Of a DNA stretch of 64,000 nucleotides, positions 38,920-40,233 are shown piece after piece; the stretch's first letter is position 1, and every line of letters begins with the position of its first letter. The translations under genes were made by a program, and so were the position numbers. The DNA is taken from sequence record NC_048045.1. One strand, given 5' to 3'. The notes under the pieces are model-generated. The model did not search any database and had not been told where the DNA came from. It saw only the letters and a program-made list of their open reading frames with translations.

Positions 38920-39008
38920 TGGAGCTACGGGAGGGACTCGAACCCTCATAGGTGTCGCCACCAGCAGAGCTTTGCAGGCCCGCGCCTAACCTCTCGGACC
39001 ACCGTAGC
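38920..39008 (-). tRNA. tRNA-Cys(GCA) with long variable arm
   Basis: GCTACGG/CCGTAGC acceptor, CTGCAAA anticodon loop, GAGGG-TTCGAGT-CCCTC T-arm, U73 plus encoded CCA; 89 nt. Confidence 0.85.
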
Positions 39009-39195: not shown

Positions 39196-39224
39196 CTTAT
39201 AGCGGAGCCTTCACGTGTCCGCAA
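39196..39224 (-). promoter_or_regulatory. Promoter for the minus-strand RNA unit
   Basis: TTGCGG-N17-TATAAG (GCTATAAG). Confidence 0.5.
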
Positions 39225-39256: not shown

Positions 39257-39286
39257 TTGACAGTCCCGATTGGGCTCTGGTAGAGA
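39257..39286 (+). promoter_or_regulatory. Promoter for the tmRNA/tRNA unit
   Basis: TTGACA followed after 17-18 nt by GTAGAGA; start near 39290. Confidence 0.55.
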
Positions 39287-39289
39287 ACA

Positions 39290-39665
39290 GGCATCGTTGT
39301 AATTCGGACAACGGAAACGGCGGCAAGACAGGGGTGCGATTCCCCTCGCCTCCACCATGAGCCCCTGGCGCTGGGAGTACGCGACTCCTGGGCGGGGAGC
39401 GTTACCCCGACGGGATGCGTCCCGAGCAAAGGTGTAGCCAGGGTCTCATGATGGGGGCGATCAGTTTCGATTGGCGCATGTGACTGGAAGACGCAACGGT
39501 GGGTGACCTCCAGGCCAGCTTGCTGGTGATCGGGTCAGTGCAACAGAAATGTCGCATCGAACGACAACGACGTCGTGGCTTACGCCTCGGCTCGTGAAGC
39601 CATCGCCGCCTAATAAGCGGTAGAGGCGTGTCCCGGCGGACGCGCGTGTCACAAAAAGGCCCTGC
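39290..39665 (+). ncRNA. ssrA: tmRNA, circularly permuted two-piece type (acceptor piece to 39357; intervening segment 39358-39452; coding piece from 39453)
   Basis: T-arm AGGGG-TGCGATT-CCCCT plus CGCCTCCACCA precedes GGGGGCG (G3-U70 pair). Resume codon GCA at 39554; tag ASNDNDVVAYASAREAIAA then TAA TAA. Outer ends approximate. Confidence 0.88.
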
Positions 39666-39824
39666 ATCTACGGACCGGGGCCAGTCCGCCTCCCACCTTT
39701 CGCAGGTGGGATCGTCATCATCGCGTGTCTGTCGGAAACTTCACGTAACCATTGACGATCCCATCTCCGTAAGGTGGTCCCATTCTGGAGCGTGGTGTGA
39801 TATCCACGGGGACCACCACACAAA

Positions 39825-39903
39825 CGCGGGGTAGAGGAGTCCGGTTGTCCTCGTCTGGCTCATAACCAGGAGATCGGGGGTTCAAATCCCCCTCCCGCTC
39901 CCA
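39825..39903 (+). tRNA. tRNA-Met(CAT), initiator-like
   Basis: CGCGGGG 5' end with unpaired C1, CTCATAA loop, GGGGG-TTCAAAT-CCCCC, CCA. Confidence 0.85.
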
Positions 39904-40146: not shown

Positions 40147-40233
40147 GGTACGGTGGCTCGACAGGTAAGGCATCGGCCTCATAAGCCGAGGGACTAGCTC
40201 CCGATCCTGGTTCAAATCCAGGTCGTACCTCCA
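40147..40233 (+). tRNA. tRNA with CAT anticodon (Met/Ile2) and long variable arm
   Basis: GGTACGG/TCGTACC acceptor, TCGGC-CTCATAA-GCCGA, V-arm GGGA-CTAGC-TCCC, CCTGG-TTCAAAT-CCAGG, U73-CCA; 87 nt. Confidence 0.82.

Follow-up and report, generated by a model that had tools for sequence, protein, structure and literature searches.

Circularly permuted genes for transfer-messenger RNA (tmRNA) are already on record in phages related to phiCbK. An ARAGORN survey lists permuted tmRNAs in phiCbK, CcrSwift, CcrKarma, CcrMagneto, CcrPW, CcrBL9 and CcrSC (Buchholz et al., 2022; PMC9004378, Table S1), the record of Brevundimonas phage vB_BgoS-Bajun (ON529858) annotates a syntenic tmRNA, a 2026 announcement credits Caulobacter phage Shash with one tmRNA and phage Senya with none, and a tmRNA was noted in the distant relative Lacusarx (PMC5648845). 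A 2025 tmRNA database paper includes 79 phage sequences, and the phiCbK genomics paper makes no mention of tmRNA or ssrA. Here, we describe the corresponding gene of Caulobacter phage CcrBL10, a phiCbK-like siphovirus of 221 kilobases (kb) that infects Caulobacter vibrioides CB15 (Dolichocephalovirinae, Poindextervirus). The window that we analyzed, a stretch of 64,000 nucleotides (nt), matches bases 62001-126000 of CcrBL10 (MH588544.1/NC_048045.1) at 100% identity, and positions below refer to it. The gene lies in the DNA replication region, within an 816-nt stretch that is unannotated in both the GenBank and the RefSeq record and that is bounded by a tRNA-Cys gene (38920-39008, − strand) and a formylmethionine tRNA gene (tRNA-fMet, 39825-39903). 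An earlier note on this DNA had left it to be checked whether permuted tmRNA is catalogued in this phage group: it is, in the seven sister phages of the 2022 survey and in Bajun, but not in CcrBL10 itself. The CcrBL10 gene is a missed annotation of an element type already recorded in its sister phages.

Sequence analysis confirms that CcrBL10 carries a real, unannotated, circularly permuted (two-piece) ssrA/tmRNA gene. The gene belongs to the Rfam family RF04321 (tmRNA_permuted), which aligns over its full model (1-213) to positions 39295-39613 of the + strand with 82.2 bits (E 3.4e-14 over the whole window), against a curated gathering score of 47 bits. The permutation can be read directly: the T-arm (39330-39346, with stem strands AGGGG at 39330-34 and CCCCT at 39342-46 around the T-loop TGCGATT at 39335-41), the 3′ acceptor strand CGCCTCC (39347-53) and the encoded ACCA (39354-57) all stand 5′ of the other acceptor strand, GGGGGCG (39453-59), on the same strand and with a 95-nt spacer between them. 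The two strands form an acceptor stem of 7 base pairs (bp) with the alanine identity set, namely G3.U70, discriminator A73 and the encoded CCA. Further downstream, the context AAATGTC (39547-39553) leads into a 19-codon tag frame (GCA...GCC, 39554-39610) that codes for ASNDNDVVAYASAREAIAA, ends in AIAA and is closed by a double stop, TAATAA (39611-16). The order of the two halves, the 7-bp stem with G3-U70 and the tag with its double stop had all been pointed out in the earlier note, and each is present in the sequence. When run with a lowered threshold (-ps), ARAGORN reports a low-scoring permuted tmRNA at 39265-39704, with the tag VASNDNDVVAYASAREAIAA followed by two stops. From this call and from conservation with relatives, the gene extends from approximately 39265/39291 to approximately 39704-39710 and is longer than the span of 39290-39665 first proposed for it.

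Covariation shows that the two halves are kept as a structure. The comparison drew on 14 distinct sequences. Two are bacterial, one from Brevundimonas lutea and one from Caulobacter (a single row for four host sequences that are identical), and the other 12 come from phages or viral contigs. We joined the two mature pieces by anchored extraction, since a MAFFT alignment of the whole phage and host genes loses register. Within the tRNA-like domain, pairing holds in 95.6% of cells, compared with 79.8% in column shuffles and 46-56% when partners are slid, changes on both sides of a pair (compensatory changes) occur in 8 of its 18 pairs, and the covariation score is 0.416, compared with 0.02-0.09 for slid structures. 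The T-stem and the acceptor stem are paired in 14/14 sequences, with compensatory changes; no sequence, phage or host, lacks G3.U70 (14 of 14), and a swap from G-C to C-G occurs at pair 5-68. On this comparative evidence, the tRNA-like domain is a maintained RNA structure. The sequence features, the RF04321 score and the covariation are far beyond chance, and together with the ARAGORN -ps call they bear out the initial proposal of a phage-encoded permuted two-piece tmRNA with its own tag frame.

The gene is also kept in place across the subfamily. By BLAST, the region is present in 31 phage records, all of them phiCbK-like Caulobacter phages except for one Brevundimonas phage. We compared ten related loci (Rogue, BL64, RBC8, Colossus, CcrPW, Bajun, phiCbK, BL57, Swift and Karma), which cover Poindextervirus, Shapirovirus, Colossusvirus and Brevundimonas phage Bajun. 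RF04321 scores 69-90 bits in all ten, and in all ten the tmRNA lies directly upstream of tRNA-fMet; the phiCbK copy spans about 103253-103692 of JX100813. On its far side, the tmRNA is flanked by tRNA-Cys in six of them (Rogue, BL64, RBC8, Colossus, CcrPW and Bajun) and by tRNA-Gly or tRNA-Lys in the four loci of Shapirovirus type (phiCbK, BL57, Swift and Karma). A TTGACA hexamer upstream of the gene is invariant across an 11-gene alignment that includes CcrBL10 and spans every subfamily genus examined. CcrBL10 thus has both marks of the Dolichocephalovirinae tmRNA locus, a position beside tRNA genes and an upstream TTGACA of its own, and shares its tRNA-fMet position and TTGACA with the sister phages phiCbK, Swift, Karma, CcrPW and Bajun. 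The permuted architecture is shared more widely, Magneto, CcrBL9 and CcrSC included; these three stand outside the comparison of position and TTGACA, and the CcrBL9/CcrSC copy is represented by its ARAGORN call only. CcrBL10 and the Shapirovirus genes have 87-88% DNA identity over 334 nt.

The closest cellular counterpart is the tmRNA of the host. The Caulobacter chromosome reportedly encodes a two-piece tmRNA, a finding said to go back to Keiler, Shapiro and Williams in 2000. A back-translated search for the Caulobacter tag, ANDNFAEEFAVAA, found it in 55 Caulobacterales genomes, in most of which ARAGORN reports permuted tmRNAs of about 339 nt. The Caulobacter crescentus/vibrioides molecule has the same circular permutation as that of the phage, the same G3.U70, the same unusual T-loop (UGCGAUU), the same D-loop analogue (GAUCAG..UCGA) and the same AAAU before the tag; its tag, too, carries NDN close to its beginning and finishes in AA. 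Beyond these features the two genes differ: only 48 of 67 positions of the tRNA-like domain core are identical, the rest of the two genes being unalignable, and a direct alignment of the CcrBL10 gene to host ssrA is confined to the two halves of that domain (75% over 48 nt and 85% over 20 nt). The phage gene is about 440 nt long, compared with about 339 nt in the host, its spacer is 95 nt and multi-branched rather than 30 nt, and its tag has 19-20 coded residues rather than 13, with a double stop and an extra GUC between AAAU and the first Ala codon. Since alignment is confined to these halves, the phage gene is an old and maintained one, from a lineage of alpha-type tmRNAs, rather than a recent capture.

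These comparisons bear on the possibility that the phage once captured a host ssrA of which the locus is the decaying relic, or that the locus is a fragment of an attachment site, in either case with no function for the phage. tmRNA genes are reported to be common integration targets (PMC4383910). Searching IMG/VR, we found the T-arm pattern GACNNGGGTGCGANTCCCNNCGNCTCCACCA in at least 120 viral contigs, with a complete permuted tmRNA (ARAGORN) in 100 among the matches listed; many of these more than 100 matches are probably host-prophage junctions, and ARAGORN flags the CcrBL10 copy itself as sub-threshold. A relic, however, would hardly be expected to have two complete halves with compensatory changes and an intact frame, to be kept with its promoter directly upstream of tRNA-fMet in ten related loci, or to be only distantly akin to host ssrA, and no integrase was found in the neighborhood of the CcrBL10 gene. 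We regard this explanation as very improbable; because the gene is complete, covarying and conserved, the attachment-site and pseudogene readings are largely refuted. As a separate observation, the tags of the permuted tmRNAs among the IMG/VR matches listed are very varied, and some of these genes lie on contigs of 259 kb, 333 kb and 361 kb.

The tag frame is open in all 11 relatives compared, and its indels (9 nt, 6 nt) are always multiples of three. Against ASNDNDVVAYASAREAIAA in CcrBL10, phiCbK and BL57 code for the nearly identical AANDNDVVAFASAREAIAA, Karma and Swift for ADNDNDVVAFASAREAIAA, Rogue, BL64, RBC8, Bajun and two IMG/VR contigs for AANDNAPFAVREAIAA, Colossus for NDNDAPVMEQLLAA, CcrPW for NDNDAPVMEQRLAA, and CcrBL9 and CcrSC for NAANDNDVVVSTMTSVKLAA. 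Constant throughout the family are NDN near the start of the tag, which recalls ANDN in the host tag, and a hydrophobic residue (I, L or V) followed by AA and a stop at its end, while the middle is variable. In E. coli and Caulobacter, the N-proximal part of the tag is its adaptor-binding end and the C-terminal part its ClpX-binding end. Since it is these ends that are kept and the middle that varies, the comparison argues for an ordinary degradative tag. The earlier note had suggested that the longer tag might change adaptor or protease routing, an idea that finds no support in the sequences: a working tmRNA whose altered tag gave its products another fate, through weak or absent SspB-alpha binding, another protease or slower decay, seems unlikely to us. 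Such rerouting would fit a tag whose middle is wholly unlike that of the host and which is 5-7 residues longer, whose REAIAA block is kept at the nucleotide level in three lineages, and whose second residue is A, S or D, with Val possibly coming first. Yet the conserved parts, NDN and the C-terminal AA with its preceding I, L or V, are the ends that known systems use, other lineages of the family end in LLAA, RLAA or KLAA as ordinary tags do, and a middle that is the least conserved part is not what a new specific signal would be expected to leave.

Two registers can be applied to the start of the tag. Among alpha-type permuted tmRNAs, the resume codon is immediately preceded by AAAU in 25 of 54 distinct sequences, as it is in the host (CUAAAU|GCG). 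Every phage copy continues AAAU with an invariant GUC, after which the codons vary (GCA, GCU, GCC or AAC). Read in the host register, the first coded residue would be Val (GUC, 39551-53), which gives V-ASNDND... and is also the reading of ARAGORN. In the E. coli register, GUC is the triplet that precedes the resume codon and the first coded residue would be Ala.

At the nucleotide level, the CcrBL10 tag cassette is, by its pattern of identities, a mosaic, with a phiCbK-type tag in a Rogue-type backbone. CcrBL10 and CcrRogue are identical at 65/65 positions of the 3′ domain, at 68/70 in the acceptor piece and at 46/49 in the stretch upstream of the tag; in the tag itself they share only 47/59, with a 9-nt gap, whereas CcrBL10 and phiCbK agree without gaps at 63/68 positions of the tag region (39549-39616). 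Similarly, Rogue and Bajun share 72 of 73 positions from AAATGTC to the stop hairpin on backbones that are about 55% identical. The simplest reading of the mosaic suggests recombinational exchange of tag modules; the alternative is very strong constraint at the nucleotide level.

CcrBL10 appears to rely on the SmpB of its host. The absence of smpB from the window, noted at the outset, extends to all the Caulobacter and Brevundimonas phage records searched: tblastn with E. coli SmpB matched 68 phage records, none of them from phages of these two genera. The host-type T-loop and D-loop analogue are consistent with a dependence on host SmpB. Similar situations have been described elsewhere. Marine phages (the OM43 phage Melnitz and the pelagiphages HTVC008M and Mosig; PMC9004378) also carry a permuted ssrA and no phage smpB; they differ from CcrBL10 in being myoviruses and, in Melnitz and Mosig, in having a glutamine riboswitch in the gene, while Rfam scans detected no riboswitch or other Rfam family in the CcrBL10 gene. 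The authors of that study propose ribosome rescue and amino-acid recycling for the marine phage tmRNAs (PMC9004378). Mycobacteriophages of the Bxz1 group and Bacillus phage G (PMC4131195) are likewise large phages with a tmRNA and no smpB, though their tmRNAs are one-piece and non-permuted.

A phage RNA without a phage SmpB must compete for that of the host, and the gene could in principle encode a decoy that inhibits host trans-translation by titrating SmpB or by entering ribosomes unproductively. There is precedent for such a role: a molecule of mycobacteriophage DS6A that consists of the tRNA-like domain only, with no tag frame, is reported to inhibit tmRNA (PMC4131195), and the authors of the Lacusarx genome paper suggest that its tmRNA counteracts host tagging (PMC5648845). 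The CcrBL10 gene, unlike that of DS6A, has a frame, and a decoy needs none, yet frame, AA ending and stops are kept through in-frame indels across the family. We consider a decoy quite improbable.

We favor, at a probability of roughly 75%, the reading that the CcrBL10 gene is a functional phage-borne permuted tmRNA; sequence comparison shows its structure, conservation and frame and that no phage smpB accompanies it, and its biochemistry is inferred. Host RNA polymerase would transcribe a precursor from about 39291, using the gene's own host-type promoter; RNase P cleavage before G39453 and 3′ trimming to the CCA at 39357 would release the structured 95-nt spacer and leave two base-paired RNAs, the acceptor piece with about 67 nt and the coding piece with about 250 nt. 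Host alanyl-tRNA synthetase would charge this RNA, and host SmpB and EF-Tu would bring it to ribosomes that have stalled on broken mRNAs. Translation would resume at GUC or GCA, so that the nascent chain would gain (A)[V]ASNDNDVVAYASAREAIAA, and the tagged chain would be passed on to ClpXP of the host, SspB-alpha serving as adaptor. The benefit is likely to be added ribosome-recycling capacity during infection, independent of the host's cell-cycle-regulated tmRNA, a view that fits the phage's own set of tRNA genes beside the tmRNA gene.

Several observations weigh against a functional tmRNA. ARAGORN, one of the checks suggested in the earlier note, reports no tmRNA on the window by default and recovers the gene only with the lowered threshold. 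The other, the full-length, clade-specific model Rfam alpha_tmRNA (RF01849), stays below its gathering score (50 bits) in the CcrBL10 window; in a permissive scan RF01849 is outscored at the gene by beta_tmRNA (44.3 bits) and dropped, and in the relatives CcrPW, Bajun and Colossus it passes its threshold with 66.8, 57.4 and 53.5 bits. The default miss and the sub-threshold RF01849 score indicate that the parts outside the tRNA-like domain are atypical. The resume codon is ambiguous, in that the context AAATGTC-GCA is present as first described but GCA is insecure as the point of resumption, GUC at 39551-53 being an equal or better candidate. Pseudoknot 1, which in tmRNAs separates the tRNA-like domain from the tag, is a putative element here (39499-39546). 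A promoter scan with the E. coli sigma-70 consensus makes no call at 39257, and a terminator scan finds no T-tract terminator on the + strand after the gene. The paper on a phiCbK RNA-seq time course mentions no tRNA or tmRNA genes (PMC10688885), and the literature that we searched contains no experiment on any phage two-piece tmRNA.

The departure of the outer parts from the bacterial alpha model also explains how the gene has been classified. By these scores and alignments, the CcrBL10 tRNA-like domain is of the host alpha type while the outer parts diverge from that model, which is why the gene is filed under the general permuted family rather than RF01849 and why it was never annotated, although its tRNA-like domain and tag are canonical. 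The copies of CcrBL10, Rogue, BL64, RBC8 and Colossus fall below the ARAGORN default threshold, and lying just under it accounts for the absence of CcrBL10 and its genus mates from the 2022 survey and from the GenBank/RefSeq annotation. Pipelines that use ARAGORN alone therefore under-count phage tmRNAs, and the annotation of CcrBL10 (GenBank, RefSeq) and its genus mates can be corrected.

Two-piece tmRNA and its cell-cycle control, along with SmpB, SspB-alpha and ClpXP, are understood better in Caulobacter than in any other organism, and the standard phages of this host are of the phiCbK type. The pair is for these reasons a convenient system in which to ask why large phages carry tmRNA. Small observations that are new are the mosaicism of the tag cassette, the long structured spacer and the long variable arms of two flanking tRNAs. 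That the swapped cassette, resumption at Val and a functional spacer RNA might each have a role of its own, beyond extra rescue, strikes us as doubtful; if they had such roles, phages would tune the fate of stalled host and phage polypeptides and not only the release of ribosomes.

The intervening segment of CcrBL10 (39358-39452, + strand), presumed to be excised during maturation, is 95 nt long, within a range of 51-176 nt across phage copies, compared with 29-30 nt in Caulobacter hosts. In phiCbK and the Poindextervirus group it is predicted to fold into a multi-branch structure with nearly invariant inner hairpins (RNAalifold consensus of −56.7 kcal/mol), closed by a stem of about 11 bp that covaries (GAGCCCCUGGC/GCCAGGGUCUC, GAGCAUCCGGC/GCCGGGUGCUC, CGACGCCCGGC/GCCGGGCGUCG). 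The spacer could be a stable by-product RNA. We also observed a UCUGAAC motif common to the spacers of Colossus, CcrPW, CcrBL9 and two IMG/VR contigs.

Upstream of the gene, on the same + strand as all the elements that follow, the −35-like TTGACA (39257-39262) is kept in 11/11 aligned phage genes while its flanks vary, and we infer its promoter role from this pattern. It is joined by a putative −10-like element, GGTAGAGA (39279-39286), placed by its position in the alignment and partially conserved, with GCTAG, GGTAG or GGTAC in relatives; we take it to resemble the Caulobacter housekeeping −10, GCTANAWC. The pattern TTGACA-N16-GKTAG has one match in the window, against 0.01 expected. From the position of this promoter alone, transcription is predicted to start at about 39290-39295, which also sets the predicted 5′ end of the acceptor piece (39291-39357, about 67 nt), otherwise delimited by the RF04321 alignment. 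According to that alignment, the 5′ strands of the long helix are CGTTG (39295-99), ACAA (39308-11), GCG (39320-22) and CAA (39324-26), and its 3′ strands, in the coding piece, are TTG (39471-73), CGC (39475-77), TGGA (39485-88) and CAACG (39494-98). The 5′ end of the coding piece (39453-39498) opens with GGGGGCG, before which the RNase P site is predicted, and contains the D-loop analogue ATCAGTTTCGA (39460-70), a close match to ATCAGCATCGA of the host. Within 39499-39546, a hairpin CAGC-TT-GCTG covaries in the alignment with CGGC-TT-GCCG of phiCbK. The AAATGTC context that follows is invariant in 11/11 phage genes.

Folding places the stop codons in the loop of a hairpin (CCGC/GCGG) and predicts further hairpins at 39626-39646 and 39658-39682, together with a terminal hairpin, CCCACCT-TTCGC-AGGTGGG, in the 3′ domain of the coding piece (provisionally 39617-39709), where the identity with CcrRogue is complete (see above) and conservation ends near 39710. 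Cofolding without constraints reproduces the T-arm as well as the acceptor stem between the two pieces, but it gives GGCGGC a partner other than that of the Rfam model and was not relied on.

Some minor features of the locus and its relatives were also recorded. The sequence CTTCACGT occurs upstream of the TTGAC boxes of both the tmRNA (39209-39216) and tRNA-fMet (39739-39746) and has six matches in the window, against 1.9 expected. As a shared promoter motif it was rejected: its distance to TTGAC is 48 nt in one case and 13 nt in the other, so its recurrence is probably chance. The acceptor end of CcrRogue and BL64 reads CGCCTCC-ACCA-CCA, with an extra CCA after the encoded one, which RBC8 and CcrBL10 do not have. 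In BL64 (PV745554), a coding sequence annotated as a "hypothetical protein" (BL64_127c, 612-953, − strand) lies on the opposite strand over the tmRNA (RF04321 at 696-1014, 88.5 bits) and is probably a spurious gene call. Two elongator-type tRNA genes that flank the CcrBL10 tmRNA, tRNA-Cys(GCA) (38920-39008, − strand, 89 nt) and a second tRNA-Met(CAT) (40147-40233, + strand, 87 nt), have a long stem-loop variable arm, unusual for such identities, and ARAGORN draws U as the discriminator in both. In the whole-window scan, the CcrBL10 tRNA-Cys falls below the Rfam tRNA threshold, although its counterparts in Rogue and BL64 reach 35.8 bits.

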